The notes beneath the pieces are model-generated. The model made no database searches. It had not been told where the DNA came from and worked only from the letters and a program-made list of their open reading frames with translations. A DNA stretch of 34,004 nt from Macrostomum lignano (Eukaryota): NCBI GenBank assembly GCA_002269645.1, contig NIVC01004829.1, positions 1 through 34,004 of the forward strand, given 5' to 3'. Below are positions 5,053 through 33,048 of the stretch, in pieces. Each line of letters begins with the position of its first letter. Positions within the stretch are counted from its first letter, which is position 1. The position numbers and the translations under genes are program-made.

Positions 5053-6319
5053 ATGAGAACTAACCAAAATTTAGTACTTGTGGCATTGCGAATGTGTACT
5101 AATCACTGTGGCGTATCTACTTCGGAAACAAAACTGGACCCATTCAAAGTGTACTAATATCACTGTGGCGCATTTACTTCGGTAACAAAACTGGACCCAT
5201 TCAAAGATGCAACTGCTTGGGAGAAAAAATTTGGTAGCTTCAGAGTCACTGCCAACAAGGCCCAACAATTTGACCGCTTCAAAAGTACATCTCATTCGAA
5301 ACAAAGGCCTGACCGCTGCAGAGTCGCTGCCAACGCTGATCGATGTCGAAATGATCAAGAACTGTCCTCCGTTCAACGAGCTCCACAACGTCGACTTCAC
5401 GAACCCCAGCCTGCGGCACCGGCTGTGTCAGGAGACGCTGGCCTACCAGTTAGTCAGGGGCAAGTTTCCTCTGTGTGAGCTGAACAGGAACTTACCGCAG
5501 CAGATGTACACCATTGTCAGACAAGGGTCTCCTCTAGCCAATGTGGCCCGAGCGATGGGCGGCGGCCGAATGCCGATATTCACATTCGGCAAGTTAAGGA
5601 GGACATGATTTCCAGACTATTGATAAAAAACGGCGCATGGGAAGCTGACTCTATTCGGACGATGCTCAACCTGTTACAGAAGCTTCCGAAAAACTCTGCG
5701 ACGTTCCTCGATATCGGCAGCAACATTGGCATCTACAGCCTGCAGGCCAGAGAGCTCGGGTATCCCGTGGTGGCCATCGATGCAAACATTCGCACACTGG
5801 TCAGGCTGCAGATGTCAGCGAAGCAGCTGAACTTGCTTGACGACAAGCTGAGGCTCTTCTGGGGCTTCATCAGAGCGACGACGTGGCAGTCAAGCGGATC
5901 AGTTGGGACGCTGACAGCATGAATTGCAATGTTGGAGGCGGCTCGGGCGGATCGACTGACTGGAAATGGCAGGCCACGAAGTTAATCGAGGACACGATTT
6001 CCGTGACCACTGTTAAAGCGGACGAGCTTCGAGCGCACATCGGCACCAAGAATGTGGTCATCAAGATGGATATCGAGTCTGGTGAGCACCTGTTCATGAA
6101 GACTGGTGAGAAGCTGTTCAGAGAGCGATCAACATCATGGCGCTGCAGATGGAGTTCTGGAGGAAAAAAATCAGTAACCGACCGCAATTGTCCGAACATT
6201 ACGAGTTTGTGACTCACTTCATGACCTCGAGGAACTTCTCTCTGCTGTCCATGAGCTTCCAAGTGCAGAACATCGCTATATTCAACGAATGGGACGGACT
6301 GTGGGTCAGAAACGAATTT
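5053..6319 (+). pseudogene. FkbM-family (Methyltransf_21-like) SAM-dependent methyltransferase, type II membrane form, decayed
   Basis: Consecutive overlapping ORFs give FLDIGSNIGIYSL (SAM motif I), VVAIDAN, VVIKMDIESGE and ALQMEF. Upstream hydrophobic anchor MRTNQNLVLVAL/CVLITVAYLLRK. Frameshifts near 5088, 5600, 5875 and 6130, and a stop inside a duplicated segment (5149-5205). No introns. Confidence 0.8.
5094..5205 (+). repeat. Tandem duplication of a ~55-57-bp segment
   Basis: GTGTACTAATCACTGTGGCG...GGACCCATTCAAA at 5094-5148, repeated with small changes at 5149-5205. Confidence 0.9.
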
Positions 6320-6519
6320 CAGCAAGACACGGAGGCCAGATCTCAGATTTCTATGGCTCAGCCGAGACAATTGCAGCAAGACACGGAGGCCAGATCTCAG
6401 ATTTCTATGGCTCAGCCGAGACAATTGCAGCAAGACACGGAGGCCAGATGTCAGAATTCTATGGCTCAGCCGAGACAATTGCAGCAAGACACGGAGGCCA
6501 GATGTCAGAATTCTATGGC
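6320..6519 (+). repeat. 54-bp minisatellite, left part (~3.7 copies)
   Basis: Unit CAGCAAGACACGGAGGCCAGATGTCAGAATTCTATGGCTCAGCCGAGACAATTG (QQDTEARCQNSMAQPRQL), in frame with the last methyltransferase ORF. Confidence 0.97.
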
Positions 6520-6616
6520 CATAGACTAAAAAATGGAATATCAAAATGAGAATAAGACGCATTTTATCAAAATGATATAAGAATAAAATGAGAATCCGCC
6601 TGGGTTACCAAAGACT

Positions 6617-7717
6617 GTGTTCAAAAAGTTGTTAGGCTTCGCTACCTCTGGCATCTTCATGTTTGATGACAAATATTATCGCCAGATTGATGGTTGTGCC
6701 ATGGGAAGCCCGCTTGCTCCTACTCTGGCCAATGTTTGCATGGCGCACTGGGAAACGGAGTGGATGTCGCTTGAGTGTGCGCCAACTTTCTACAAGCGCT
6801 ATGTTGATGACACTTTTGTCATTTTTGATGACCGGGCTAAGTACCAAGAGTTTTTTCGGGCTCTGAATTCAACCCACAGCAACATCCAATTCACCGTTGA
6901 GATGGGAGGTAAAAAACTTCCGTTTCTCGATGTTGAGGTTGATCTGAGCAGTGGCCAAGTCTCTACTCGGGTTTATCGCAAGCCCACGTTTACTGGTTTA
7001 CTGTTGAATTTCAATGCCCTCTGTCCGAAACAGTGGAATATTGGCCTGATCCATTGTATGCTGCACAGAGCTTACTCTCTGTGTAGTTCCTGGGCTGCGT
7101 TTGATGAGGAGGTGAAAAATTTGACTAGGATTTTCAGTATGAACGGATACCCAAAAAATCTCATTAGTCGGTTGATTTTCAAGTTTGTCACTGATAAGGT
7201 TACTGGCAGACTGCAACAGAATCATAGTAAAAAGCCGGATGACCCCGTGATGATCTTGCCGTTCTATGGTATCCCGTCTATCTTGTTGAAAAAGAAGCTT
7301 GAGAGATCTTTTCGGAAATGGTACAACACTCCGATTAGGATTGTCTTTCGCACTGCCAAGGTGGGTCAATTTGTCAGCAATCTCAAGTCCCATGTTCCTC
7401 GTGCTCTAGTTGCAGGTGTCGTCTATAAATTTTGTTGTTCTGAAGATCAGAATATCTCTTACGTGGGAAAAACCAAAAGACACCTGCACACCAGAGTTAG
7501 GGAGCATTGGCTGAAAAAATCTGCTATCCAGGACCACCTTCTGGAATGCAAGGGCTGCTGTGACAGAGAACAGATTGAATTGTTTAAAATTATCGACCGT
7601 GCTAACTCTGAATTCAAGCTTAGCATTCTTGAAGCGCTGCACATCAAAGCTCAAAATCCCAGTCTCAATGTGCAATTGCTACATAGTGGTGCGGGCCACC
7701 TTCTTAGGGTGTTTTGA
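6617..7717 (+). CDS. Penelope-like reverse transcriptase C-terminal half plus GIY-YIG endonuclease (truncated ORF)
   Basis: GCAMGSPLAP (RT motif B'), YKRYVDDTF (motif C), LPFLDV, YRKPTFTG, and VVYKFCC...SYVGKTKRHLHTRVREH (GIY-YIG). Uninterrupted 366 aa. Confidence 0.93.
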   Translation: MFKKLLGFATSGIFMFDDKYYRQIDGCAMGSPLAPTLANVCMAHWETEWMSLECAPTFYKRYVDDTFVIFDDRAKYQEFFRALNSTHSNIQFTVEMGGKKLPFLDVEVDLSSGQVSTRVYRKPTFTGLLLNFNALCPKQWNIGLIHCMLHRAYSLCSSWAAFDEEVKNLTRIFSMNGYPKNLISRLIFKFVTDKVTGRLQQNHSKKPDDPVMILPFYGIPSILLKKKLERSFRKWYNTPIRIVFRTAKVGQFVSNLKSHVPRALVAGVVYKFCCSEDQNISYVGKTKRHLHTRVREHWLKKSAIQDHLLECKGCCDREQIELFKIIDRANSEFKLSILEALHIKAQNPSLNVQLLHSGAGHLLRVF

Positions 7718-7978: not shown

Positions 7979-8211
7979 TTTCGCCTTAAATGTTGATCTT
8001 AAGCTTTATTTAAAATCGTTGTTAAACTAGATATTAGACGTTAGACTGATGAACTGCATAATTTATATATTTTGCTTTCAAACTTGTATACATGCGAATG
8101 CGAATAACCGTCAAAAAGTTGGAGTAAAAACGGTTTTTGTCAAACTGCTAAACTGCAAATATTTCAGTATCAAATTTTTCACTGACTGGCTTTATATTGG
8201 CTAGCAAATTT

Positions 8212-8400
8212 TGGCTGGCAAACTTCCGGCAGGCAAACGTCGGCTGGCAAACGTCCCGCAGGCAAACGTCCGGCAGGCAAACTTCGGCTGGCAAACGTCC
8301 CGCTGGCAAACGTCGGCTGGCAAACGTCGGCTGGCAAATGTCGGCTGGCAAACGTCCCGCAGGCAAACGTCGGCTGGCAAACGTCCCGCAGGCAAACGTC
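8212..8400 (+). repeat. Short-unit GGCAAACGTC(GGCT/CCGCA) repeat, probably a subterminal array of a non-autonomous DNA transposon
   Basis: About 13 copies of GGCAAAC(G/T)TC spaced 14-15 bp, ending at GCTATCCC next to the 54-bp array. Confidence 0.85.
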
Positions 8401-8408
8401 GCTATCCC

Positions 8409-8830
8409 CAGAATTATATGGCTTAGCCGAGACAATTGCAGCAAGACACGGAGGCCAGATGTCAGAATTCTATGGCTCAGCCGAGACAATTGCAGCAAGA
8501 CACGGAGGCCAGATGTCAGAATTCTATGGCTCAGCCGAGACAATTGCAGCAAGACACGGAGGCCAGATGTCAGAATTCTATGGCTCAGCCGAGACAATTG
8601 CAGCAAGACACGGAGGCCAGATCTCAGAATTCTATGGCTCAGCCGAGACAATTGCAGCAAGACACGGAGGCCAGATGTCAGATTTCTATGGCTCAGCCGA
8701 GACAATTGCAGCAAGACACGGAGGCCAGATGTCAGAATTCTATGGCTCAGCCGAGACAATTGCAGCAAGACACGGAGGCCAGATGTCAGAATTCTATGGC
8801 TCAGCCGAGACAATTGCAGCAAGACACGGA
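8409..8830 (+). repeat. 54-bp minisatellite, right part (~7.8 copies)
   Basis: Same unit as 6320-6519. Ends on CAGCAAGACACGGA, the motif with which the left array starts. Confidence 0.97.
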
Positions 8831-9732
8831 AAGACTTAAAAACAATACGTGGTCGAACTGCACACACCAACTTGCCTCCCTTCCCACTCCACTCACCAAT
8901 TCGCACACATTTTCCATAGCTTAGCGGCACTGGGCAAGCGAGTGAATGGCAGACTGTGTTCCAATCATAGTTCTAATCGATAACTGTATCCGTACAGTCT
9001 GGTGGCGTGAAACTCCAATTCTTGTTCTCCATGTTAGACACCCAATAATATGTAGGCAGCTGCAAGTTTCCCGCTTGGACAGCTGTTTCCAGACGTTTAA
9101 CAGACGGATCAACTCATCCGGGAATTCTCCCAACTCCATTTTCCAAACTGCGTCCGCACTTTCAATTGCAGCCCAGTTACTCGTATTCCATTTTCATTCC
9201 GTGTCCTCCCGTGCTTTATGAAGAAATTGCCCCGACTTCTGGGACACCTCTCGAAGTTTAAATTTAAAGCATATTTCAAATGAGTAATTTTAATTGCTGG
9301 AGGGAAAGCTTTTCACGCGGATGAAAGCGGGTCAATGAAACGTTTCAATCGCTTTTCGTTCGAGCTACCGCGTGCAGTGAGTTTTGTGTCTTAACTATTT
9401 TGTACACCTGCCTTGTTGTTTTTATTCTGCTGAAGCTTTTTGGGTGTTCATTTTACTGCTTTTGCTTTCCTCAAATAATGTGTGCTCGTCACTTGCCGGG
9501 GCGTTTAGCTCGAATTCTCGTCTCGTTCGGCAGCCTGCAGTCTGATTTCCTCCTATCGGTGAGTGCAGTATACGGATAAATATAAAATTGCACAGTGCAC
9601 GAAATAACAATAGAGGATTAAATGTCGCTGTACAGTTCAGATCAAAATGGGCCGGGAGGTGGTGAGCAAATCGAGGGCAGTCAGAGTCCAAGAGTCGCAA
9701 ATTTAGGAATAGAAATATATCAAATGTTGATT

Positions 9733-13048: not shown

Positions 13049-14803
13049 TCAGGTTTGGCAGCTCGGCATGGCTTTCACTTCAACGCCGGTCCCCGTGTCG
13101 CAGTTTGTCGGATTGTTTACTTCGTCGATGCGCGCCTTCCCACTACGTCGCAACCAGGCCAGGATGAAGTCGTGCAGCAGCTCGATCAGCTCGCACATAG
13201 TCAGGAGGGACATGCCGAGGTACATGCCCATGATGCCGCCAACGTCGCCAAAGAAGCTGTCTATCGAATACGCGTAGGAGAAGGAAATCCGATTGGCGGT
13301 GCTTTTCTGGCTGGTGACGCGCAACTTCAGCCAGTTCTCGCGCACGTATCTCTGCACATCTGCAGCAACGTCCGTGCTGGCATTGGCGGCAGTAAGCAAG
13401 GAGTTGGCGAATTCCAACGCTAAAAGTTGCTCGCCAAGAGGCGCATTCTTCAGTCGCAGTTTCACCAACGCAAGCACCATGCTGGTGTCACCACCTGGGG
13501 GCCAGGGAACGCTCGATGCGGTGGTGACCTGATAGCGGCGCTGCACGCACAGCATTTGGTGTTCGCACTTGGCGCTGTCGCTTGAAGGTGCTTTGCTGCC
13601 CGTCTCCAGGGTGCCGCTGGTTGCATTCGGCAGGAGGATCTGCGTGTTGAAGAAACCGTCGCTCTCAGAGAGATTCCAGATGGATTTCTTGCTGCTGCCG
13701 AGCCACGGCTGCGGCATGTAGCCCAAGCTGCCGTTGATGGCTTGTTCGAGATCCTCCATCTGTGACGCATAATAGCAGTACTCCTTGCTGTACTTAAACC
13801 TGTAGGCGGAATTGTTGTACGGATTCAAGAAGTACACGTCGCTGTGGCTGGGCAGGCACTTTTTATTTCCAAACTGGTCAATATCGTAAGCCTCCTCCTG
13901 CATGCTGAGCTGAAGTGTGTGAAATTTACCCCCTTCAAGCAGCTGATTTGTGTCGAACGGATTTGGATAACGCCCAGGCGATACGATGTAAAGCCGAACC
14001 TCCGGCTGGTTCTTGGAGGTGAACCAGACCTCTGGGGCGAGCATCCACCTGGGCGGTCGCAACTGCTTGCCATAGAAATCCGTCAGGCTCGGCAAGCTGG
14101 CATTCTGCGCCGGCTTCGGCATTCTATCGTCTGGGGTGTCCATCATCAGAGTGATGAAGACGCCATTGAAGGGACCGGCGGTTTTCAGCAGACCACGCTG
14201 TGTGTCTGTCAGACGCAGCCGGAAGCAGCGCAGGTGATACGGATGAAAGAACTCTTCGAGTTGGAGATCCATCACAGTGGTCTTCAGTCCCGAGCCAACA
14301 GCCATCTTCGCCTCCATCACAGTCTGGGCCATGGTGCGTCCCAGCTTGTCGATGGCCAGGTCAAAGGGCAGACAGTTCGTGTAGAGGAACTGCGCCAGCA
14401 GCGGCAGCGCCGAGCACGCGAGTGGCTTTCCGGTAGAGTTTGCGGGACACCAGCGCTCAAGTGCTGCGGTCACGTCAGCGAACCTGGCCTTCACCTCTGC
14501 CGCCACCTGGGCTCCGGCTGCCAGGTAGCGACTGCCGGAAAACGGACTATCAAAGCAAAAGTACAAATCGGGGAACTCGAATTTAAGGCTGTCGGCCTCG
14601 TAGCTGCTGGACACAGAGACGTGGCGCAGCTGGTTGATGAAAGTGGCGCAGTTCCTGGCAAACAGGACAGCCATGGCGAGGAACAGCAGCAGCCAGAAGA
14701 TCCTAACGGCCAGGGATCGATCGCTGACGGTTCTGGCCAAGCCGTGGGCGGAGGTGCTGGCGATGCAGCGGCTGACGATCTGGCCAGAGGTGACGGCTGA
14801 CAT
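13049..14803 (-). CDS. Divergent DEG/ENaC (ASIC/degenerin) family sodium channel, 584 aa, intronless
   Basis: N-terminal STSAHG motif, TM1 RIFWLLLFLAMAVLF, post-TM1 FEFPDLYFC, and TM2 signature FFGDVGGIMGMYLGMSLLTMCELIE with the GxS filter. Confidence 0.93.
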   Translation of the reverse strand: MSAVTSGQIVSRCIASTSAHGLARTVSDRSLAVRIFWLLLFLAMAVLFARNCATFINQLRHVSVSSSYEADSLKFEFPDLYFCFDSPFSGSRYLAAGAQVAAEVKARFADVTAALERWCPANSTGKPLACSALPLLAQFLYTNCLPFDLAIDKLGRTMAQTVMEAKMAVGSGLKTTVMDLQLEEFFHPYHLRCFRLRLTDTQRGLLKTAGPFNGVFITLMMDTPDDRMPKPAQNASLPSLTDFYGKQLRPPRWMLAPEVWFTSKNQPEVRLYIVSPGRYPNPFDTNQLLEGGKFHTLQLSMQEEAYDIDQFGNKKCLPSHSDVYFLNPYNNSAYRFKYSKEYCYYASQMEDLEQAINGSLGYMPQPWLGSSKKSIWNLSESDGFFNTQILLPNATSGTLETGSKAPSSDSAKCEHQMLCVQRRYQVTTASSVPWPPGGDTSMVLALVKLRLKNAPLGEQLLALEFANSLLTAANASTDVAADVQRYVRENWLKLRVTSQKSTANRISFSYAYSIDSFFGDVGGIMGMYLGMSLLTMCELIELLHDFILAWLRRSGKARIDEVNNPTNCDTGTGVEVKAMPSCQT

Positions 14804-15147
14804 TCTTGCTGAACTGTACTTTCCGCTGCAAGCTGGCGTGTGTTCAAACGTTAGCGATCAATGTTTCTCTTGAACCCAGTCAGGGATCGGCTGAAATTCA
14901 GGGACCGGGTCAGACTAGTAAGTGGCGATTTTTATGAGCGCTCGAGGGCACCGACTGTTCAAATAGAGCTTCACCCAATCCAAACACGAAGTAGCAAAGG
15001 GCACAAGAGGAGCTCAGCTCTTCAATCAACTGAACTTATGTTGACACCAAAGTCATGCATTAATCAAACTGACAGGTAAAAAGCCATTGTTGCAAGTCTA
15101 TCAACATTAACTGTTGCTTGTAACTGGGATCCCAGCACACTAGAAAT

Positions 15148-15936: not shown

Positions 15937-19103
<3,167 letters not shown>

Positions 19104-19467
19104 AGCAGAAACGGCGAAAAGGCGGGTTTCTGCTTTCCAAGGCACCAAACGACAGCACAATTATCGATTCTATTTACTAATGTACAAATAATCTTGTTGA
19201 AAAAAAGAACTTGAACGAATTTGAGTTGTAATATCAAGTGCTACAACAAGTACGCTACTGTACTATTGTATCGCAAATAAAATCGATTAACACCTTTTAA
19301 ATAATATAAACACGCACCATCAGAACCAGAGTCCCCGCTCTATTCACAATAGAAAAAATTCCTTTCTGCAGAGTGCGCAAAAGGTTGCGCTCAAAATATT
19401 CATATAAGATTTTTGCAGCATAAAGAGTCATTAAAGAACAAGCCATCTACGAGCAACTTCTGTCACT

Positions 19468-19665
19468 CAGTCCTTCATCCAGTGGATTCCCAGCCTCCGA
19501 ATTCCCCATCAGTTAGTCCTTCATCCAGTGGATTCCCAGCCTCCGAATTCCCCATCAGTTAGTCCTTCGTCCAGTGGATTCCCAGCCTCCGAATTCCCCA
19601 CCAGTCAGTCTTTCATCCAGTGGATTCCCAGCCTCTCCATCAGTCAGTCCTTCATCCAGTGGATT
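19468..19665 (+). repeat. 46-bp minisatellite (~4 copies)
   Basis: AGTCCTTCATCCAGTGGATTCCCAGCCTCCGAATTCCCCATCAGTT-type units start at 19469, 19515, 19561 and 19607. Confidence 0.93.
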
Positions 19666-22600
19666 TTGATCCTCACAGGCGCCGCCACTGCCGCAGTCTC
19701 GGCGCTGGGGGCGGCCGATACTCGCCGCTGCCTAGACAAAGCGGGTCCCTTTGATCTCGCCGCCCTGGCCCTGCCTTTGGAGGCGGCGACTCTCAGCCGG
19801 TCCTGGCGGAGCTGCTCGAGCCGGTCCAGCTGGCGCAGGTTGCGCCTCAGGTCCACCTGCTTCTCGATGGGCAGGCGGTCCAGCCGCGCCGTGGTCACTA
19901 GGCGGATGCACTGCGTCAGCGGGGTCGGCGCCACCTCCTCGGCCGTCACGTACTTCGCCGCGTCCTCACCGTCGATGATGGGGTGCATCCAGGTGGACCG
20001 GCGGTCGCCGCTGAGGCCCGTGCCCGCCGGCTTGAAGATGTGGAAGAAGATTTCCACAGCATCCGACTTGCTCAGCGTGGCGGCACCGCTGACTCCCCGG
20101 CCCCTCCTGCTGTGGAAGGCTTCCAGGGTGTCCGACACCTCCCGGTGCGCCGGGAAGAAGCCGCAAACGTTGAACAACTTCATGAGGTCGCGCTCGCCCA
20201 GGCTGCCCTCGAAAGCCGTCGCATCGAATCCGATCTCGAGGCCTGCGAGCGACGATTGAGCACGGCTGAGCACAAGTTCCACATCCCAGTCACCCACATC
20301 CCAGTCACCCACATCCCATTCACTCTCATCCCCAGTCACCCTCATCGCCAGTCACCTACATCGCCAGTCACCCGGCCACGACCCCAACTCACGCCGCTTG
20401 TCCTCCATAAACTGGTCGAGCTGGTCCATGTCGAATCGAACCTCGGGCCGCTTCGTGGCGCCCGTGGCGGCCCGCACGATGCGGTGGATCAGTGCGCAGT
20501 AGTAGGCGAGGAACTCGCGCAGGCCGGGGAAGCCGTGCAGCCGGGCTTTGGCGGTCAGCCGGCGGAGGAACCGGCGGACCAGGTGGCCGCGCACCGTCTT
20601 CTGGATGATGACGGCCGCGATGTGCCTCTGGCGCTGCGTTGGACCGCGCCTGGGCGGATGGAAGCTCCTGAGAGGGTGTCACGGGGTCTTCGACAATAAT
20701 GGATAGCTGCTGGGTCACTAGCTGAGATTAAATGGATAAAATTTGAAAAATCAGGTGGCTTTGAAAAGTGCAGGTTTTAATAGGCCGGGATTAGCAATAA
20801 AAAAATCAGGATCAAATATGAGTCTCGCTAGCGATCAACCACAAAAATCGCCAAATATCTGCACTGAGAATCGCCAATCGTCTATAAAGACGCCAGAAAT
20901 TTTCCTAAGGAAGCGATGCAAGCCGGACACTCACTGATAAACTTCCACGTGCGGCCCAATGACCTCCAGCTTGGACTCCAGCTTTGCCGCGTGCTCAGAC
21001 GTTCTGAAACGGTTGAATAAGTTGTTGCCAGCTTGGTTTCGGGCCTCGGATCATGACTCCTACATGCATGTATAGGAGAATGATTGAATTTCGAGTAGGG
21101 GCAGAGTAGGAGCAGGAGTAGGAGCAGAGCAGAGCAGGAGCAGAGCAGAGCAGAGCAGAGCAGAGCAGAGCAGAGCAGAGCAGAGCAGAGCAGGAGCAGA
21201 GCAGAGCAGAGCAGAGCAGAGCAGAGCAGAGCAGAGCAGAGCAGGAGCAGAGCAGGAGCAGAGCAGGAGCAGAGCAGGAGCAGAGCAGGAGCAGAGCAGG
21301 AGCAGAGCAGGAGCAGAGCAGGAGCAGAGCAGGAGCAGAGCAGGAGCAGAGCAGGAGCAGAGCAGGAGCAGAGCAGGAGCAGAGGAGGGGAAAGCCAAGA
21401 GAACAGGAGCAGAGCAGACAAGGCCCACCAGCAGCACACGCGGCTCACTCTGTCTTCTTCTCCTCCAGCTTGGCCCGCCTCGCAGCCGCCTCAGTGCGCA
21501 GCCGCCTGTCGCAGCCGTCAGTCCAGTCAGTCTTGGCTGACGCAGGCCTCGACTCGATACGCTTCTTGCGCTGAAGGTGCCGGCGAAATTCGCTGCCTCG
21601 GGAGGGGGTTTTGAATGTACGATAGAATGTCCCAGTTTACATTTAAATGTCACAATGAAGAAATGTACCCCAGCATATTGGTATTTCCGATGCGGTACAT
21701 CGAATCGATAAAAGTTCCTTAGACTATTCAAGATGAAAACCGGTGCTGTAGGAACAAATTTCAAGATTATGGAACTGAATTTAGAGTCGTTCAGTGGTTT
21801 TAAGTTCGCACAATGGAGTCTTCAATTCATTTTTGAACTTTAATTATCGGTAGCAAAGTTACTTTAAATAAAGCAAGTCTGTCGAAACATGTTTGGTAAG
21901 TTAATTTAAATAGAAAACTGGTTTATTTCAAAAACAAACTTTGCTTAAGTCTTCACACATTCAAATAAGCAGTCTATCGCACGCATTAAACAATGCTACA
22001 AACAGTCCGATAAGTGTCGGGCGCTTTCAAGTCTCGTTCCAGGTTGCGGCAGGGCTGCTTAACGGCGGTAGGAGCCCTTGCCGCGGGGGCCGGGACCATA
22101 GTACTCGTATTCTGGCTCGTAGCCATAGCCGCCGTAGCCGTAGCCGCCGTAGCCGGGACCATAGCCGGGACCATAGCTGGGACCATAGCTGGGACCATAG
22201 CCGGGACCATAGCCGGGACCGTAGCCGGGACCGTAGCCGGGACCGTAGCCGGGACCGTAGCCGGGGCCGTAGTCACCGTAGCCATATTCGGGGCCATAGC
22301 CACCATAGCCGTAGTCGTAAGTGTCATAGACCTCCACAGTGTCATAGCCACCACCGTAGGCCACGGCGATCAGAGCGGCGAGGAAGAGCAGGCACTTCAT
22401 ACTGACGCTGATTGAGATGTCGATCGGTTTGTCGAGTCAATGTAGAGGCTTCTTGATTGTAGCTTGAGTGACGTCTCAGGCTGGCTGAGACGCTTTGTAT
22501 TTATAGGCGTTGGGCCAGTGGAATTTCAGCTTAATCTGCAACCCCCCAAATTCTCCACCCCAACAGAATTTCAGCAGAGCCGGTAGGTGGGGGGTAGAAA

Positions 22601-25600
22601 TTTACAGGCCAGATAATTAAAGTCAGTTTGCACGAGCCAATCAGCATCGAGATAAGGGGTAGGGTGGCAAGAAAGGCCTCTCAGCCGCGCGCCCGACAGT
22701 CTAACCCCCCCCCCCAAGTCTAGTACCCCACACCCCCTCTAAGATAATGACCCTCACGATCACACCACCAACCTTGCAATCAAAGCTGCCCCCCCACCAA
22801 TTGCTATACGGCATAAACTGATAAAGCTCTTACCTATTATAATTAAATTGTCTGATATTGTCAATGCCTAACTCTAGACCAATGGCTCAGACAAATTAAT
22901 TACACCATCGCTTGTGCTACTGTCTGTGAGCCAATAACTTTATACTGACCGATATTTAGAATAGAGCAGCTACTAAATAATAAAAAATTAGCCAAGTCAC
23001 ACTGTGCACTCTTAAATTTCAGCCTCTTCCAAGTTTACTAAATCTATATAACTAAAATGAAACAAATTTTACCGTTTTGGACAGAAATTAAAAAGGGAGA
23101 AGTTTCATTGTTGAGCGAGATTCTTCGAGAAACCTTAATGAGAGTTTCTAGGAATCTTTGTTTCGAATCTAAGCTCGTCGTTACACGGAAAATCAAATAA
23201 ACAGTTGGAACGATACCTATTTTTACTTAGCAAAATTGAAAACAGCCACCCTAAGACCCAGTGCGCCTGAGCGTGAGTTGGAAATCTTGCGTCATTGTTT
23301 CAAGTAGTGAGCTGAATTCAATTGTTCTGCCAGTGCTCTGAGGTGGCGGGTTTCAATGTTGCTGAGTACAACTGCCAAGTTGAATCAATATTCAATCACT
23401 TTCGGTTATAACTATTATAAGTTAAAATATGACTCAAAATCCCATTCCATGAATACTTGGATATGAATGAAAATTGTGAGCAAAAGCTCTGATACTAGCA
23501 GTATATGCTATCCCCGATGCTAAGAAGAACATAAAAGTCCCAAGAGCAAAGTGCGTAACACAACAAATTCACAACGAAACAATGAGAACTTGATAGTTGC
23601 AAGATTAGGCAAAGCTCGATGCTGGATATTGGCTCTCTTTATACCTGTTGCGTACGAGCTAGTAAGCCCGCAATTAAAATATTCTACACTACAGTGTAGA
23701 GGCTTTGTCAGCCTCAGTCTGCTTAATAAGACTACTTAGTGCAATTAGCCTGAATAATCAGTCTGCCTTAGCCTGCCTTAATAAGTCTACTTAGTGCAAT
23801 TAGTTTGACTAATCAGTCTGCCTTAGCCTGCCTTAATAAGTCTACTTAGTGCAATAAGCCTGACTAATCAGTCTGCCTTAGCCTGCCTTAATAAGTCTAC
23901 TTAGTGCAATTAGTTTGACTAATCAGTCTGCCTTAGCCTGCCTTAATAAGTCTACTTAGTGCAATAAGCCTGACTAATCAGTCTGCCTTAGCCTGCCTTA
24001 ATAAGTCTACTTAGTGCAATTAGCCTGACTAATCAGTCTGCCTTAGCCTGCCTTAATAAGTCTACTTAGTGCAATTAGTCTTGGACTAATTAGCCTGCCT
24101 TAATAAGTCTACTTAGTGCAATTAGCCTGACTAATTAGTCCGCCTTTGCCAACTTACCGCTGAATCTTCAAGGCGGCCATTCGCTCTCGCAGAGCCTGCT
24201 CAATCACGGAGCTGTCAAACTTTCTGACGTGATCCGGGGCCAGGTAGGGATGCTTGAAAATCCTGCAATGGTAAAAATGAGTAGCATTTTAAAGTTTGAA
24301 CTCAAACTTGGTTAGATGGGCAATGGCGGAGACTGCAAGCCAGCAGCTTACTTGTGAATGTCAACCTCGTCCACAGCCCGCTGCCAGCGCTGCAGCTTCT
24401 CAGCCTCATCGGCCGGGTCGGGGACTTCGAAGTCCTCAGGAATCGGGCGACCCGTCTGGGCGGTCTTGGCCGAAGTGGCTGCTGAAAAACAGAGCGGTAA
24501 ATGCGCCATTCATAGAAGCTGTTTTTTCGAATACGGCGAGGCTGGGGGGGGGGGTGGGCAACTCACAAGTCCTCCTTCCAGCAGATCTCCCTGCAGTCGA
24601 GCCACGGGCGCCGAAAGCCGATCTCGGAACCTTGCTGGACCGCGCGCTGTGCGCCGATGCGCATCTTGTTGGACATTCTAAAAAAGTGCCAAAAACGCAT
24701 ATTACTCTACTGTCCAGTAGAGAAGTAAAGAAAACCGTGCATCTATTTTAATCAACGGTGCAATGAAAGTGAATATGATACTCGTACTTTTTTTCAGATG
24801 AATTGATTCGTGCGCAAAAAGTACTGCTTGCAAATCAGAGAGAGTCCGCAATTTCACTTTCTAGGAAAAAGATGCCATAACCGGATGCTGAATAGCAAAT
24901 TACAAATGTCGTAAAAGCAAACTTCTTGTTGAGGAGGGATCTAAAAGTGAGTTACCTTCAATTTCCAATGCCCTACCAATGCAACTGGAAGCAGAAAGGC
25001 AGAACATGGGTCGAATTATTTTAGTAGTTTAATTTGGCACTTTTTAGTATTTTATCTGTCTGAAAAAGCATGAATAAATTAGTTTATTCCTAGCTCATAC
25101 TACTCGCAGTAGACTTTTAGTGATATAAATGGCCTTTTGCGGTCTAAAACTGGGATAAAAATCAATAACTCAATAATTTTGTTTGACACTCGTGGCTGCT
25201 AGATGACTCAATCCAAAGCCAGGCTCCTTCTAGAGCTTCACCTGAGACAATTTTGTTGCCGGTCAGCTGGAAGCTGCAGGCCTCCGGGCTCGCCGCACCG
25301 CCGCCGCCGCCGCTGTAGGTCGACTCGAGCTGGTCGCCACGGCGCAGTCCGTGCACTGCAATGAACCTTGCTGTGACAAAACCAAGAAACAGCCCACACT
25401 GACACCCACACTGACACGCACACTGACATCCATACTGACACCCATGAACTGACATCCACACTGACACCCACACTGACACGCACACTGACATCCATACTGA
25501 CACCCATGAACTGACACCCACACAGACATCCTACACTGACACCCCACACTGACACCCACACTGACACCCATGAACTGACATCCACACTGACACCCACACT

Positions 25601-28600
25601 GACACGCACACTGACATCCATACTGACACCCATGAACTGACACCCACACAGACATCCTACACTGACACCCCACACTGACACCCACACTGACACCCATGAA
25701 CTGACATCCACACTGACACCCACACTGACACGCACACTGACATCCATACTGACACCCATGAACTGACACCCACACAGACATCCTACACTGACACCCCACA
25801 CTGACACCCACACTGACACCCACACTGACACACATGAATTGACACCCACACTGACACACATGAATTGACACCCACACTGACACCCACACTGACACCCACA
25901 CTGACACCCATGAACTGACATCCACACTGACACCCACACTGACACCCATGAACTGACACCCACACTGACACCCATGAACTGACATCCACACTGACACCCA
26001 CACTGACACGCACACTGACATCCACACTGACACCCATGAACTGACATCCACACTGACACCCACACTGACACGCACACTGACATCCATACTGACACCCATG
26101 AACTGACACCCACACAGACATCCTACACTGACACCCCACACTGACACCCACACTGACACCCACACTGACACACATGAATTGACACCCACACTGACACCCA
26201 CACTGACACCCACACTGACACCCACACTGACACCCATGAACTGACATCCACACTGACACCCACACTGACACCCATGAACTGACACCCACACTGACACCCA
26301 TGAACTGACATCTACACTGACACCCACACTGACACGCACACTGACATCCACACTGACACCCATGAACTGACACCCACACAGACATCCTACACTGACACCC
26401 CACACTGACACCCACACTGACACCCACACTGACACCCATGAACTGACACCCATACTGACACCCATGAACTGAAACCCACACAGACATCCTACACTGACAC
26501 CCACACTGACACCCATGAATTGACACCCAAACTGATTACCCACACTGACATCCACACTGACACCCATGAACTGACACCCACACAGACATCCACACTGACA
26601 CCCCACACTGACACCCACACTGACACACATGAACTGACACCCACACTGACACTCACACTGACACCCCACACTGACACCCATGAACTGAAACCCACACAGA
26701 CATCCTACACTGACACCCCACACTGACACCCATGAACTGAAAATAATGAACTGACACCTACACCCACACTGACACCCATGAACTGACATCCAAACTGACA
26801 CCCCACACTGAAAGACTGCAGCTCAGAGACATCCCAGGATTGTAAAACGCTGCAGCACCGCAGACATATCAAAGCTCACGCACCGTGGCTGATGAAGTCC
26901 CTGCCATTGGCCAGCTGCCTGGCGTGGTACTCGAACTCGGCCCTGAATGTGGCCGCGGCTCCGCCGTCGCGAGACGATGGCACCGAAGGCGGAGCCCGCC
27001 GGAGAGCGGACTGAGCTCTTGCTGCCAGGGAGGCGGCGCTGGCTGTCCTGGCAGGCGTCGCTGTGGCCGGCCTTGAGCGAATCGCAACGGCGGCGAGAGC
27101 CGGCTGTTGTTGAGGCCGCCGCTCCAGTTGCTGCTGCAGCAAGCGCTGCACATGCTGCTGCTGCTGGTGCCGTCTCTGGGCAGTTGTTGGGCGGGACAGA
27201 CTGACGGAAGATCGCGGCCTACATGTGTATGCATGAAATCATTTGTGTTTGCAATGGTTTCAGAATTTGTGCTTTATTTGTGGAGCAAAGCACTGTTTGG
27301 GGAAGGCCTTCCAAGTATCCTTGAGGAAAGCTGGGCTAAGCAGTGATAAGGGAGGCCGTCCAAGTGACCTTTGAGGAAAGCTATAGGCTAAGCAGTGATA
27401 AGGGAGGCCGTCCAAGTGACCTTTGAGGAAAGCTAGGCTAAGCAGTGATAAGGGAGGCCGTCCAAGTAACCTTGAGGAAAGCTAGGCTAAGCAGTGATAA
27501 GTAAGCCGTCCAAGTGACCTTGAGGAAAGCTAGGCTAAGCAGTGATAAGGGAGGCCGTCCAAGTAACCTTGAAGAAAGCTAGGCTAAGCAGTGATAAGTA
27601 AGCCGTCCAAGTGACCTTTGAGGAAAGCTAGGCTAAGCAGTGATAAGTAAGCCGTCCAAGTGACCTTTGAGGAAAGCTAGGCTAAGCAGTGATAAGGGAG
27701 GCCGTCCAAGTAACCTTGAGGAAAGCTAGGCTAAGCAGTGATAAGGGAGGCCGTCCAAGTGACCTTTGAGGAAAGCTAGGCTAAGCAGTGATAAGGGAGG
27801 CCGTCCAAGTAACCTTGAGAAAAGCTAGGCTAAGCAGTGATAAGGGAGGCCGTCCAAGTGACCTTGAGGAAAGCTAGGCTAAGCAGTGATAAGTAAGCCG
27901 TCCAAGTGACCTTGAGGAAAGCTAAGCTAAGCAGTGTTAAGGGAGGCCGTCCATGCAAGTGACCTTGAGGAAAGCTAGACTATGCAGTGCTAAGGGAGGC
28001 CGTCCAAATGACCTTGAGGAAAGCTAAGCTATGCGTGCTAAGGAAGGCCGTCCAAGTAAGAGAGACAATTGCAGAGTGAGTCGACTCACCGTCCAATAGC
28101 GGACTGCTCTGCGCCCTTGCTAGACGAAGGAACTGAATCAGTTAAAAGGGCATTGCATGTTTCAAGTATCAGAAAATCAGCTTAGATACATGCGCAGAAT
28201 TTACATAAGAATAGAAACTGCGAACTTCCAACCTGGCCAGTGCAGCCTGGGACCCAGCAGATCAACGTAGGAAAGGCTCTGCTGCGCTTCTCTGCTGTCG
28301 CTTTGTGCGTCGGATTTCTGCCGAAAATGATTGAACATGAGAAACTGTGAGTTATGAGTTGAAATCTCTGAGAAGGTCTGTAGGAATGAAATTAGAAATC
28401 AATTTGCCCCAGTCAGGTTTCGGAAGTTTCCCAATTGAGGCCTGGAACTGGAATTCAGCCTAAAGTCGGCGCCCCGCATCGAAGTCCGATAGCGCCCGAT
28501 ATGCAGAGAAAACAATTTCTCATCACTGCGGTAGCCAACTAGGATTAGAATTGGGACTCGAACCCAACATTGTGACTAATTGTCACTCAATTGATGGGCC

Positions 28601-29019
28601 TCATCGTCAAGCAGTAAAGATTCTTTTTGGAAGACACGGTCTTTTAGTCCACGAATCAAAGGAGCTGTAGAGAAGTTAGAGACTCGTACACGCACATCAA
28701 GTCTGAACGATGCCAAATGAAACTTAAATTTGTCACCCTTGATTGAATGCATGAAGGCATGAGTTTAGCAAGTGCTGCACAGACAGACAGAGAGTACAAG
28801 CATAGATGCTGGCCCAGCCGAGTGGTGCAGGGTGAGGAAGACAAGTAGAAAAGACAGTCGAACAGCCTGCGATTCCCTCACCGGGTTTTCAACCGCGCCC
28901 AGTCTCGGTTCGGGCTGAGCTGCAGGCTTTCGGTTTCGGAGGCGCCTGGCTGACTCGGCCACCAAGCTGTGGCTGCTGAAGGACTTGCTGGCTAGCCTGT
29001 GGTGAATCGATGTTTTCAT
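19644..29019 (-). CDS. IQCM: IQ-motif protein, IQCM-like, 11 reconstructed exons (~680 aa)
   Basis: Phase-consistent GT-AG exons: 29019-28882, 28317-28233, 28132-28090, 27200-26880, 25366-25242, 24677-24567, 24481-24352, 21592-21449, 21003-20935, 20667-20393 and 20242 to 19677/19644. IQ motif AAVIIQKTVRGHLVRR. C-terminal LFNVCGFFP...STWMHPIIDGED resembles the IQCM C-terminus as I recall it. The 3' end is uncertain and the symbol needs BLAST confirmation. Confidence 0.75.
20280..20372 (+). repeat. 15-bp repeat (CCCAGTCACCCACAT) in short IQCM-like intron
   Basis: About 6 degenerate copies. Confidence 0.8.
21107..21417 (+). repeat. (GAGCA)n / (GAGCAGAGCAG)n satellite in IQCM-like intron
   Basis: Direct reading. 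Confidence 0.96.
21922..21927 (-). terminator. AATAAA polyadenylation signal of the nested GYGP gene
   Basis: TTTATT on + strand, 132 bp downstream of the stop codon. Confidence 0.6.
22059..22400 (-). CDS. Secreted Gly/Tyr/Pro-rich repeat protein (GYGP)n, 113 aa, eggshell/structural-like
   Basis: Signal peptide MKCLLFLAALIAVAYG, about 11 (G/S)YGP repeats, basic C-terminus. Single exon with GC-rich codon usage, upstream TATA and downstream AATAAA. Confidence 0.88.
   Translation of the reverse strand: MKCLLFLAALIAVAYGGGYDTVEVYDTYDYGYGGYGPEYGYGDYGPGYGPGYGPGYGPGYGPGYGPGYGPSYGPSYGPGYGPGYGGYGYGGYGYEPEYEYYGPGPRGKGSYRR
22498..22505 (-). promoter_or_regulatory. TATA box (TATAAATA) of the nested GYGP gene
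   Basis: About 100 bp upstream of the ATG. Inr-like TCACT near 22471-22467 and a CCAAT box (AGCCAATCAG) near 22636-22645. Confidence 0.7.
23735..24140 (+). repeat. 55-bp minisatellite (~7.5 copies)
   Basis: Unit CTTAGTGCAATTAGCCTGACTAATCAGTCTGCCTTAGCCTGCCTTAATAAGTCTA. Confidence 0.96.
25394..26810 (+). repeat. CACTGACACCCA / ATGAACTGACAC 12-bp-based compound satellite filling an IQCM-like intron
   Basis: Direct reading. Higher-order blocks of ~118 bp recur around 25500-25800. Confidence 0.96.
27300..28058 (+). repeat. 49-50-bp minisatellite (~15 copies) in IQCM-like intron
   Basis: Unit GGGAGGCCGTCCAAGTGACCTT(T)GAGGAAAGCTAGGCTAAGCAGTGATAA with a GTAAGCC variant. Confidence 0.96.
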
Positions 29020-31346
29020 TTAAACATCTTTTTAATTATTTTTTATCTAATAGGAAGCAGTTAATTAACAAATGTGAATAGCTGTCTGTGTGCACTAGAT
29101 TGCCTCTTAGTAGGTTTAACTATTTAAAAGATAATAAAAAGTTTTTTCAATCTTTATATCACTTTCTATTTACTTTAAAAAGAAAATTTAGTCTTTAGCA
29201 GCAAGACTGTGGCTGGTAGACTCACAGAAATTGGTGATTCTCCAAATCAATCTGGGATGTTACTTTGCCACGCCAATCAACCAGCGACTCAAACTCTTGT
29301 TTGTAAACACCATCACTATTCAAACTGCAATAAGCATAAGAGGTACACAGTTGAGCTCTTCCTTACTTAAAACCAATAATATTATTATAGCAAGATAGCA
29401 GGACAACTTTGAGAGCTGCCAGATGTTACTTACCAGTCTGTATTTTCTGGAGGCATCAATGATGCCATTTAATTTTTTAAAGATGTTTTCAAGATCTTTA
29501 GATAATTTTGATTTTTATGTAGCCTATAGTTCAAGTTTATCTATTTAAAAATGGCTTTGTGCCACAAAAATGTAAATAAGCTTTTGGCCAACGCTTTCTG
29601 CTAAATAGATACAATTTAATTTACAGAAAAGTAGGTATCTGCAGGCAGAATTCATAAAATTCTCAAATTTATCATCAAAAGTATAAGCTCATTTATTAAG
29701 CCTATTTGCTATTTATTAGGAAACGTTTGAATTTTATAACTGACTAATATCAGCCCTGTAAAATTAGCTAACGGCTAGTGGCAGTTAAATGAATGAGACT
29801 TTCTATGGCTTTAAAAATACTATTATTGTTGCCTATTTACGAGCACACGTGTTTTCATAAAAACACGAACGGCATTTTAAGATTAAATACTATTTATCTT
29901 AGCAACGCCACGTTAGTTTCTTAGAAAGACCTGTCGTTAGTTTGAACTATGAAAATGATGACGAAAGGAAAACTTACTTTACTTTTCTACTCATAAAGTC
30001 GACCAACTAGGAAACCAAACAATTCAAAACTTTTTGTAATTACCTAAAAAGTACAAACATTTGTGTGCTGCGTCGAAATTTTGCTGTGACGAAAGCACAT
30101 GCACTGTACATGTATGTCTAGTTCCATTTCTAGTACATGCGTGCATTATACCATACTTAACCAAACCAAGGAGTTGTTTAAGCTTAACTTATATAGAACA
30201 GTAGAGTGGAAGTCCAAGTCTTGTACGAGTACGTAGCTGAGCAGGAAAACTTAAAGAGCAGTAGCTAGTTCGCTCAGCTCAAGTGGTTATATGCACATAC
30301 TGTATTTATAATTACAGACGGAGCTTGATCGCCACAGAATACATTCGCATAAAAACTGCACGATTTTAAACTGAATATACAATTATTACAATTAGCATCT
30401 TCTGTTTTCTGGTACATATAAATTAAGTTCATAGTAGTATATAAGTTTATCTATCAATATAATAATATTGTTTAACTTCTATCAATATACTATTCCTATT
30501 GTAGAATGAGAAGGAAAATATAACTGTCAATAATCGATACAAACAAAATATATTTTACTTTAATAGACTACTACTACGCTCGTACGCTCTTATAGTAAAT
30601 TAGTTTTGGGTCATATAGCGAGTGTGTCATGCTACATACAAACTTAATTTTTGTTTTCCGTGAATATCGATATATCAATATCATTTTTTCCGAGATGGAC
30701 ATGTGACGATGAGGACGCACTTTTTCCAAATTTCACGCTCGCACACATGGGCTCCAAACTTGCTAGCCTACTAACAGCAGGCTATGGGCATTTTTCTCCT
30801 TTTTATGTAATTTTCTCAGCATTCATACTAGTAGGATTTTTGTAGCTATATGATTTTGCCATACTTATAGTTATAATAACGTAGGCGCGGTTTTCGCTAC
30901 TTTTGGGGTCATAAATCATTGCTTTTGAGCTGGTCTGACAGCCACCTGTGCCTCACTCAGTGTTGAGGCTGGCGCCAGATGTGAGAGGATGCGGGCGGTA
31001 GCTTTTTTTCTCATCATTTTTGACAGGCCATCAGATTTATGAGGCCAGAGGCTATTGTTCGTGTTCACTCGAGCGTTTGACAGCTTTGACAGCTATGCGT
31101 TTTACCCCTAAAAGTACTTTGGGATTAGCGATTAGCGATTCCTCTTCACCATCTTCACTTTCTACTTAATGAGATCTTTCTAATGTATATTTTTCATTAA
31201 TTTTTGTAATTCCAACGCGAAAGGTCATAAATCATTATGTAGCGATTTTGAGTGATTTATGCAGACGGCACCTGGCGAATTTTTATGGCCCTGAGGGAAC
31301 TGATAGGATCTTCTGGTCACGTGAGTTTGGGTGGCAACAAGCTCAG

Positions 31347-32935
<1,589 letters not shown>

Positions 32936-32938
32936 CAA

Positions 32939-33048
32939 GCTCAGCCAATCAGAAAATTCGACGTCAGTTATAACAAATCGGCTCAGCCAATCAGCCTCGA
33001 GGTGTTCCATTATAACAAATTGCGGTCCAGTTGGCGCGGTATTTAACC
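32939..33048 (+). promoter_or_regulatory. Duplicated CCAAT-box module with CRE-like and TATA-like motifs
   Basis: GCTCAGCCAATCAG...TTATAACAAAT occurs twice (~42-bp period), GACGTCA near 32961-32967, GTATTTAAC near 33038-33046. E-box CACGTG at 31318-31323 lies on the other side of the LINE. Confidence 0.5.

Follow-up and report, generated by a model that had tools for sequence, protein, structure and literature searches.

In Drosophila melanogaster, 71% of nested genes lie on the strand opposite to that of their host (Lee and Chang, 2013; PMC3814207), whereas same-strand and opposite-strand cases are described as "broadly similar" in mouse and human (Montibus et al., 2024; PMC11694760). Nested genes that share the strand of their host form a minority class, mostly of single-exon genes located in long introns (PMC3814207; PMC11694760). 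A first, sequence-only reading of the locus described here had stated that most nested genes are antisense, which overstates a bias that is only moderate. Flatworms offer a second point of comparison, the eggshell precursor Smp14 of Schistosoma mansoni, which is tyrosine-rich and cross-linked by tyrosinases (PMC4014452).

The window analysed, from Macrostomum lignano (assembly GCA_002269645.1), covers contig NIVC01004829.1 from end to end (34,004 bp). The RNA-seq-based annotation in GenBank calls a separate gene (the guest) within the limits of another gene (the host), and both have the same orientation, on the minus strand. Taken as a whole, the locus probably consists of two separate same-strand Pol II transcription units, with the guest inside host intron 10. 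The host features that define this arrangement are the following:

19644-29468, minus strand: CDS span of the host gene, BOX15_Mlig010218g1 / PAA46504.1, from the GenBank record and gene call.
24352-24481, minus strand: host exon 9, the upstream exon of the sequence-only reading, which matches the annotated exon exactly.
24351-24263, minus strand: host intron 9, 89 nt.
24158-24262, minus strand: host exon 10, 105 nt, seen in protein models P0001, P0002 and P0004.
23707-24150, unstranded: 55-bp minisatellite of about 8 copies, which begins 7 nt inside intron 10.
21593-24157, minus strand: host intron 10, 2,565 nt, GTAAGT...GGCAG, the longest host intron, which encloses the entire guest gene.
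21449-21592, minus strand: host exon 11 (EFRRHLQRKK...), an exact match to the annotated exon, with the remaining half of the IQ motif that begins in exon 10.

The host protein PAA46504.1 has 752 aa and is encoded by 14 coding exons separated by 13 GT-AG introns (CDS GC content, 64%), and its sequence (P0002) was rebuilt exactly from the exon coordinates. Its only recognisable features are IQ motifs, with a Pfam IQ match at E=3.4e-6 in two matched stretches. The sequence-only reading had called the host IQCM-like, a tentative label for which these motifs are the only shared trait seen. Relatives at E<=0.001 are limited to one cluster, made of M. lignano models, and no relative was found in the PDB; an AlphaFold2 single-sequence prediction of the C-terminal 361 aa was unusable (pLDDT 43.7).

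Exon 10 codes for IFKHPYLAPDHVRKFDSSVIEQALRERMAALKIQ (IFKHPY...AALKIQ) and for parts of two split codons, K and R, which are completed by exons 9 and 11; the first half of an IQ motif also lies in it. The reading DIHK-IFKH...AALKIQR-EFRRHLQRKK is found in P0002, the transcript-based GenBank protein, and in two UniParc models, P0001 and P0004 (the latter a paralogue or allele model of the host protein). The junction between exons 10 and 11 is spanned by a weak match of the Pfam IQ type (IQ_SCN5A_C, E=0.0052), which falls short of the curated cutoff. Since intron 10 splits the IQ motif AALKIQR-EFRRHLQRKK, both flanks of the guest belong to one gene. The sequence-only reading had placed the guest in a single 2.76-kb intron, 24351-21593, between exons 24481-24352 and 21592-21449. 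The guest does lie inside one intron and the two exons are real and part of one gene, but the span proposed is in fact intron 9, exon 10 and intron 10, and the direct DIH-N-EFRR join does not occur, exon 10 having been missed; that join appeared to be in frame only because the length of exon 10 is a multiple of 3.

The locus resembles catalogued same-strand nested genes in that the guest is a single-exon gene in the longest intron of a multi-exon host and, like many nested genes, the guest is small and apparently lineage-restricted. It differs from the Drosophila, mouse and human cases in that it belongs to a free-living flatworm, which also has spliced-leader trans-splicing and operons. The claim that the guest is a complete, separate gene on the host's own strand agrees with the host mRNA model, which skips it, and the GYGP ORF is absent from the annotated host protein. 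The nesting is real but ordinary, and the pair is already public as two overlapping gene calls in the M. lignano annotation. The arrangement itself carries little weight, same-strand single-exon nested genes being a documented class. Literature and supplements queried with the host identifier, the GYGP peptide and a DNA string gave no match, and no intronic RNA gene emerged when the window was scanned from end to end with Rfam and for tRNAs.

The guest is described by the following features:

22635-22642, minus strand: inverted CCAAT box GATTGGCT, a putative promoter element about 130 nt upstream of the TATA box.
22498-22505, minus strand: guest TATA box TATAAATA, 98-105 nt upstream of the ATG.
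22472-22492, minus strand: palindrome CGTCTCAG-CCAGC-CTGAGACG, a perfect 8-bp stem just downstream of the TATA box.
22465-22471, minus strand: candidate Inr-like site TCACTCA, whose A follows the first T of the TATA box by 36 nt.
22059-22400, minus strand: GYGP-frame ORF of the guest, 113 aa and a stop codon, from the first ATG after the TATA box; proposed true CDS.
22353-22400, minus strand: MKCLLFLAALIAVAYG, predicted to be a signal peptide, its -3 residue being A and its -1 residue G.
22147-22272, minus strand: 12-bp tandem array of GGCTACGGTCCC, read as GYGP, 10.5 copies, 95% matches.
21986-22345, minus strand: CDS given to the guest by GenBank, MTLWRSMTL...ATVPATVP... (119 aa), which is not in frame with the GYGP ORF.
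21922-21927, minus strand: guest poly(A) signal AATAAA, 131 nt past the stop codon and followed by T-rich sequence.

These elements span 22505-21922 (from 22642 if the CCAAT box is included) and fall wholly within intron 10 (24157-21593). The elements named by the sequence-only reading, TATAAATA, the Inr-like site, the signal-peptide ORF and AATAAA, were all recovered on the minus strand, with TATAAATA at 22505-22498 and AATAAA at 21927-21922 as it had stated. Four copies of TATAAATA are present in 68 kb (both strands of the window), against 0.54 expected from shuffles. The usual distance from TATA box to Inr is approximately 28-33 nt, and the 36 nt of the guest lie slightly beyond it. The palindrome at 22492-22472 came up in a scan for bacterial-type promoters and terminators, otherwise irrelevant to a eukaryote. 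A search for flanking direct or inverted repeats, for further copies in the window and for a poly(A) tail found none; with neither flanking repeats nor a tail, the guest bears no mark of transposon or retrocopy origin.

According to the arrangement favoured here, transcription of the host, an IQ-motif gene of 14 coding exons, would run straight across the guest, and splicing of the 2,565-nt intron 10 would remove the guest sequence from the host transcript. The guest would be an intronless gene of approximately 0.55-0.6 kb with a putative TATA-box promoter and an AATAAA of its own and, lacking introns, would therefore offer no competing splice sites to the host. The internal poly(A) signal had been regarded as a special burden on the host. 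This view does not hold, given that the sense strand of the host introns contains eight AATAAA/ATTAAA hexamers, seven of them besides that of the guest (introns 5 and 7 contain two further AATAAA), so that the guest signal would be just one among several that the host pre-mRNA passes. Transcriptional interference or mutually exclusive expression, also proposed, finds no sign in the sequence.

The guest would make a 113-aa secretory precursor, which begins with MKCLLFLAALIAVAYG followed directly by GGYD..., and from it a 97-aa mature protein made up largely of (GYGP)n (Gly 37%, Tyr 28%, Pro 14%). Among the 71 ORFs of the window that start at a first ATG and reach 60 aa or more, only two have an N-terminus resembling a signal peptide, and the guest scores highest, its mean Kyte-Doolittle hydropathy of 2.23 being the top value among the 71. 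No ATG occurs between the TATA box and the ATG at 22400, which has A at -3 and A at +4. The ORF forms an island of 63.7% GC, resembling the host CDS, within intron DNA of 37-40% GC. Exact look-up of the GYGP protein in a contig index and a cluster collection gave no match. Homologues were then sought among 1.84 billion representatives by a word-indexed search and a full HMMER search, which returned only low-complexity or repeat matches (bacterial proteins, circumsporozoite repeats) and no credible match across the N- and C-terminal parts, so that conservation lends no support to the frame or to a function.

Judged by its composition, the guest product most likely has a structural part outside the cell and lends itself to cross-linking through its tyrosines, and a role in eggshell, gland secretion or another hardened matrix is possible. 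As in trematode eggshell precursors, short tandem repeats dominated by Gly and Tyr in a small flatworm protein with a predicted signal would make a plausible substrate for tyrosine cross-linking. The likeness is one of composition only, since no homology was detected (the match lists are unnamed, and a schistosome protein may be among the weak repeat hits), and the GYGP tetrapeptide, unlike the trematode precursors, is Pro-rich. Macrostomum is not known to have vitellaria, and its eggshell granules form in the oocyte. The first reading had speculated that host and guest might serve opposite germ lines of a hermaphrodite, and M. lignano is indeed a simultaneous hermaphrodite. There is a slim chance that the guest is a Macrostomum-restricted gene born in place from a 12-bp intronic minisatellite, which later acquired both a TATA promoter and a signal peptide and came to make a tyrosine-cross-linkable (GYGP)n protein (e.g. 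for eggshell or gland secretion), expressed apart from the host in tissue or sex function in a mutually exclusive use of the DNA. If the tissue specificities of host and guest prove to be opposite, the locus could become a small model of the interplay between a host and its nested gene, for which M. lignano is suited because transgenesis works in it.

The annotated guest CDS is a different matter, and the new point of this analysis is that the public annotation most likely reads the guest in the wrong frame. The M. lignano annotation rests solely on RNA-seq data and de novo transcripts, in which ORFs were called with TransDecoder (PMC5730564). The guest call resembles mis-framed CDS calls of the TransDecoder type, in which a repeat unit that is a multiple of 3 stays open in all frames: all three are open across the guest repeat, and a 119-codon frame was picked over the first-ATG frame of 113 codons. 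The annotated CDS is thus probably a longest-ORF artefact. The GYGP frame is favoured because of its first-ATG position, its signal peptide and its codon usage, which fits the host CDS better (mean ln RSCU 0.167, against 0.009 and -0.253 in the other two frames), although this last argument is a weak one, as just four codons make up most of the repeat.

The opposite case, in which the GenBank frame (22345-21986, with an ATVP/AMVP repeat) is the real product and the GYGP ORF stays untranslated, is unlikely. In its favour are its deposition as the CDS and its greater length (119 codons against 113); nevertheless, its ATG is preceded, 55 nt upstream, by another in good context, its codon fit is poorer, it has neither a signal peptide nor any other recognisable feature (mean hydropathy 0.55 against 2.23), and it has no homologue support, a search with the annotated ATVP frame having returned nothing. 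Moreover, the longest-ORF choice of TransDecoder accounts for the call without any biology. With the deposited CDS very probably out of frame, a likely secreted Gly/Tyr/Pro-rich protein is missing from protein databases, and screens of the secretome, seminal fluid or eggshell that rely on predicted proteins would miss it. Other repeat-encoded secreted proteins in the M. lignano annotation may share this artefact.

How the guest transcript arises admits other explanations. In M. lignano, 30% of genes are trans-spliced and 15% lie in operons (PMC8629364), so that an independent guest promoter is not guaranteed. As with those operon genes, two same-strand genes may share one primary transcript (PMC8629364), and the guest mRNA, having no promoter of its own, could be cut from the host pre-mRNA by spliced-leader trans-splicing and polyadenylation, each transcript giving either host or guest mRNA. 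The annotation pipeline uses spliced-leader and poly(A) signals to divide transcriptional units (PMC8629364; PMC5730564), and AG dinucleotides closely precede the guest ATG, at 22409-22408 and 22403-22402. We consider this origin improbable, in view of the canonical TATAAATA, which is suitably spaced from the ATG and is itself preceded by a CCAAT box. A trans-splice acceptor YTNCAG does not occur between TATA box and ATG, the nearest one (22541-22536) being upstream of the TATA box. Furthermore, the spliced leader of M. lignano ends in ATG and, by our own reading, joining it at 22407 would open a short out-of-frame ORF. Unlike the operon genes, the guest is intronic rather than past the host poly(A) site, has a TATA box of its own and lacks YTNCAG before its ATG.

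It is more doubtful still that there is no real guest gene and that reads from unspliced host pre-mRNA over a 12-bp minisatellite open in all frames gave rise to the gene call. Minisatellites are abundant in the window, some with 12-bp periods and long open frames, and no guest homologues were found. Against this, the guest combines a TATA box and a poly(A) signal with a signal peptide at the first ATG and with GC content and codon usage like those of coding sequence. The rough joint chance, from the frequencies of the TATA motif and of signal-peptide-like ORFs in the window, is approximately 2e-5, and the non-repeat N- and C-terminal parts of the guest are in frame and likewise rich in Gly, Tyr and acidic residues. 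Least credible of all is an alternative 3'-terminal exon of the host, joined from exon 10 to the AG at 22409-22408 and terminated by the guest poly(A) site, so that an IQ-GYGP chimera would result: exon 10 does end in phase 2, and an exon from 22407 would continue in the GYGP frame as R-V-S-MKCLLF..., but such a phase match at any single site has a 1-in-3 chance, the acceptor has a poor polypyrimidine tract, the junction is absent from all protein models, the signal peptide would be internal and useless, and the TATA box and the separate gene call point to an independent guest unit.

The GYGP-repeat gene (the guest) is a small intronless gene nested on the same strand within an intron of the IQ-motif gene BOX15_Mlig010218g1 (the host), a placement that had been proposed by a sequence-only reading and that is borne out by the host gene model, by an IQ motif split across the intron and by a separate GenBank gene call. 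When the host protein PAA46504.1 (P0002, 752 aa) is mapped onto the window it occupies 14 minus-strand coding exons, 29468-19644, separated by 13 introns, every one of them GT-AG, and the translation of the joined exons is identical to P0002. The elements of the host that surround the guest are the following.

24481-24352, minus strand: host exon 9 (annotated), the upstream exon of the sequence-only reading
24262-24158, minus strand: host exon 10, 105 nt, with the borders cattgcag/G...CG/gtaagt
24157-21593, minus strand: host intron 10, 2,565 nt, which contains the guest
21592-21449, minus strand: host exon 11 (annotated), the downstream exon of the sequence-only reading

The limits originally given for the intron (24351-21593) were wrong, since they overlooked exon 10; because this exon lies between the two flanking exons, the intron that bears the guest is intron 10, 24157-21593. 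The two exons, 24481-24352 and 21592-21449, are indeed annotated as exons 9 and 11 of one gene, but the direct DIH-N-EFRR join proposed for them does not hold, given that the three available protein models all read DIHK-IFKHPYLAPD...AALKIQR-EFRRHLQRKK. The join seemed valid because the omission of exon 10, whose 105 nt are a multiple of 3, preserves the host frame. The stretch AALKIQR/EFRRHLQRKK is an IQ motif interrupted by intron 10 (supported, independently of the annotation, by a Pfam IQ match and by an IQ-type match across the junction), and therefore both flanks belong to one gene and not to two neighbours. The label IQCM-like, which the sequence-only reading gave to the host, is tentative: IQ motifs were the only features found in it, the search with its exon translations gave one cluster with M. 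lignano members and no relatives beyond this species, and its AlphaFold model is unusable. A second M. lignano protein model of this gene, P0004 (UniRef100_A0A1I8IV56), lacks exon 7 and shows a small number of substitutions relative to window exons 6-13 (among them IFKHLYLAPD, RIQSRPAS and PPKRGPT); it represents an allele, a paralogue or an isoform that skips exon 7.

The TATA box, Inr-like site, signal-peptide ORF and AATAAA previously described for the guest were all found, at minus-strand positions 22505-21922, together with two further elements.

22642-22635, minus strand: inverted CCAAT box, approximately 130 nt upstream of the TATA box
22505-22498, minus strand: TATA box TATAAATA (motif match)
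22492-22472: perfect GC-rich palindrome CGTCTCAG-CCAGC-CTGAGACG, 6 nt downstream of the TATA box, in the expected start region
22471-22465, minus strand: Inr-like TCACTCA (motif match)
22400-22059, minus strand: 113-codon ORF in the GYGP frame, ATG at 22400, TAA at 22061-22059
21927-21922, minus strand: AATAAA, 131 nt beyond the stop codon

The question of which frame of the guest is translated arises because the GenBank record, which places a second gene inside the host and on the same strand, assigns to it the CDS 22345-21986 with a product of 119 aa; this translates as MTLWRSMTLTTTAMVAMAPNMATVTTAPATVPATVP..., a different frame (ATVP) of the same repeat. None of the three frames meets a stop codon within the 12-bp array GGCTACGGTCCC, which reads as GYGP, has 10.5 copies with 95% matches and encodes most of the mature guest protein. 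The GenBank annotation of M. lignano derives solely from RNA-seq and de novo transcripts (StringTie/TACO), which were split wherever experiments had located spliced-leader or poly(A) sites; its CDSs were picked by TransDecoder (PMC5730564). A predictor of the longest ORF would choose the annotated frame, since its 119 codons exceed the 113 of the GYGP frame. No ATG intervenes between the TATA box and 22400, where the GYGP ORF begins; this first ATG has A at both -3 and +4, and the ATG of the annotated frame lies 55 nt downstream of it. A signal peptide is predicted in the GYGP frame only (mean hydropathy of 2.23 versus 0.55), and this frame also agrees best with the codon usage of the host CDS (mean ln RSCU of 0.167 versus 0.009 and -0.253), which is weak evidence because four codons dominate. 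Finally, the make-up of the GYGP product fits known secreted structural proteins, while the ATVP product resembles nothing. The GYGP frame is thus likely the true one and the deposited CDS probably a longest-ORF artefact; that the annotated frame is correct seems unlikely. This probable error, which hides a likely secreted GYGP-repeat protein, is a useful by-product of the analysis, and further repeat-encoded secreted proteins of the same annotation may be affected likewise.

The N-terminus of the GYGP product, MKCLLFLAALIAVAYG/GG, resembles a classical signal peptide, with a basic residue 2, a 12-residue hydrophobic core and, in the predicted peptide, A at -3 and G at -1. The six frames of the window contain 71 first-ATG ORFs of 60 aa or more; a simple signal-peptide filter retains only two of them, and the guest has the top score. 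The mature protein (97 aa) consists of 37% Gly, 28% Tyr and 14% Pro, and its Lys and Arg residues are confined to the last 8 positions. It has no Pfam match, it is missing from the protein collections searched, and no homologues emerged when 1.84 billion representatives were scanned in full with HMMER or in a word-indexed search; the matches were confined to the repeat or driven by composition (for example, bacterial proteins), and a search of the PDB led to circumsporozoite repeats. In composition it comes nearest, among proteins of known function, to tyrosine-rich ones that undergo extracellular cross-linking. The textbook flatworm example is Smp14, an eggshell precursor of schistosomes on which tyrosinases act as cross-linkers (PMC4014452); the likeness to it is one of composition and not of membership, and the test of homology failed. 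Eggshell is one of several candidate roles for the product, the others being shell or cement gland, adhesive or other gland secretion, and hardened structures.

With regard to transcription, TATAAATA occurs only 4 times in 68 kb (both strands) versus 0.54 expected from shuffles. The palindrome may bind a transcription factor or form a hairpin at the mRNA 5' end. The guest ORF has 63.7% GC, near the host CDS (64%), in intron DNA of 37-40% GC. Marks of a transposon or retrocopy (repeats on either side, a poly(A) tail, a second copy) were not found. Given a suitably spaced TATA box, the CCAAT box, the palindrome, an AATAAA of its own and the lack of such marks, the guest is read as an autonomous intronless unit. 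It could in principle be cut instead from the host pre-mRNA by spliced-leader trans-splicing, since 30% of M. lignano genes are trans-spliced to a spliced leader (PMC8629364), but the consensus acceptor YTNCAG is absent from the TATA box to the ATG and is next met only beyond the TATA box, on its upstream side, which makes this origin improbable. That the guest call is a pure minisatellite artefact is very unlikely. Splicing of exon 10 to the AG at 22409-22408 would be in frame (R-V-S-MKCLLF...) and give a chimeric host-guest isoform, but nothing supports it and its probability is minimal.

During host transcription the autonomous guest would be a mere part of intron 10, removed by splicing, and it offers no competing splice sites because it is intronless. 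The proposal that its internal poly(A) signal forces interference was overstated: the host introns hold 8 sense-strand AATAAA/ATTAAA hexamers, including AATAAA in introns 5 and 7, and the guest signal is not exceptional among them. Interference can be relevant solely in cells in which both promoters are active. For M. lignano, a free-living flatworm that is simultaneously hermaphroditic, the use of host and guest in opposite germ lines, as suggested in the sequence-only reading, is speculative.

The notion that same-strand nesting is unusual also went too far. In Drosophila, approximately 10% of genes are in nested structures, and 71% of nested genes are antisense to the host; the 29% that share its strand are mostly single-exon (72.5%) and of narrow expression (PMC3814207). 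For mouse and human, same-strand and opposite-strand nesting is described as "broadly similar", and nested genes prefer long introns (PMC11694760). The pair described here fits this profile (same strand, single exon, and the longest host intron, the remaining ones being 85-1,528 nt) and belongs, as an ordinary case, to a known class; the public annotation already records it.

Elsewhere in the window, the host introns and 3' flank are dense in minisatellites, with periods of 12, 11 (also readable as 5), 55 and 46 bp.

25240-26830: minisatellite, host intron 6
23707-24150: minisatellite, host intron 10
21093-21418: minisatellite, host intron 11
19463-19665: minisatellite that crosses the host stop codon and extends into the 3' flank

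The period-12 array of intron 6 has an open reading frame of approximately 519 codons on the host strand, without coding annotation. An annotated tetraspanin gene (15937-18600, plus strand, 279 aa) lies on the opposite strand approximately 1 kb downstream of the host stop codon; it overlaps a minisatellite of great length (~16000-17500) in which both GC skew and AT skew are strong. Upstream of the host, near the contig end, RNase H and reverse-transcriptase-like ORFs (31445-32948, minus strand) constitute a retrotransposon remnant. An ORF at 6587-7714 (plus strand) contains a reverse transcriptase (RVT_1) followed by a GIY-YIG nuclease, both just below the Pfam curated cutoffs, a domain pair typical of Penelope-like retroelements; long minisatellites that are themselves open reading frames lie on either side of it (5873-6604 and 8151-8972). 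Lastly, an uninterrupted 602-aa ORF (13052-14857, minus strand) with a full-length Pfam ASC match (DEG/ENaC amiloride-sensitive sodium channel, E=3.6e-32) is not among the genes listed for that part of the record and may be an unannotated single-exon channel gene.
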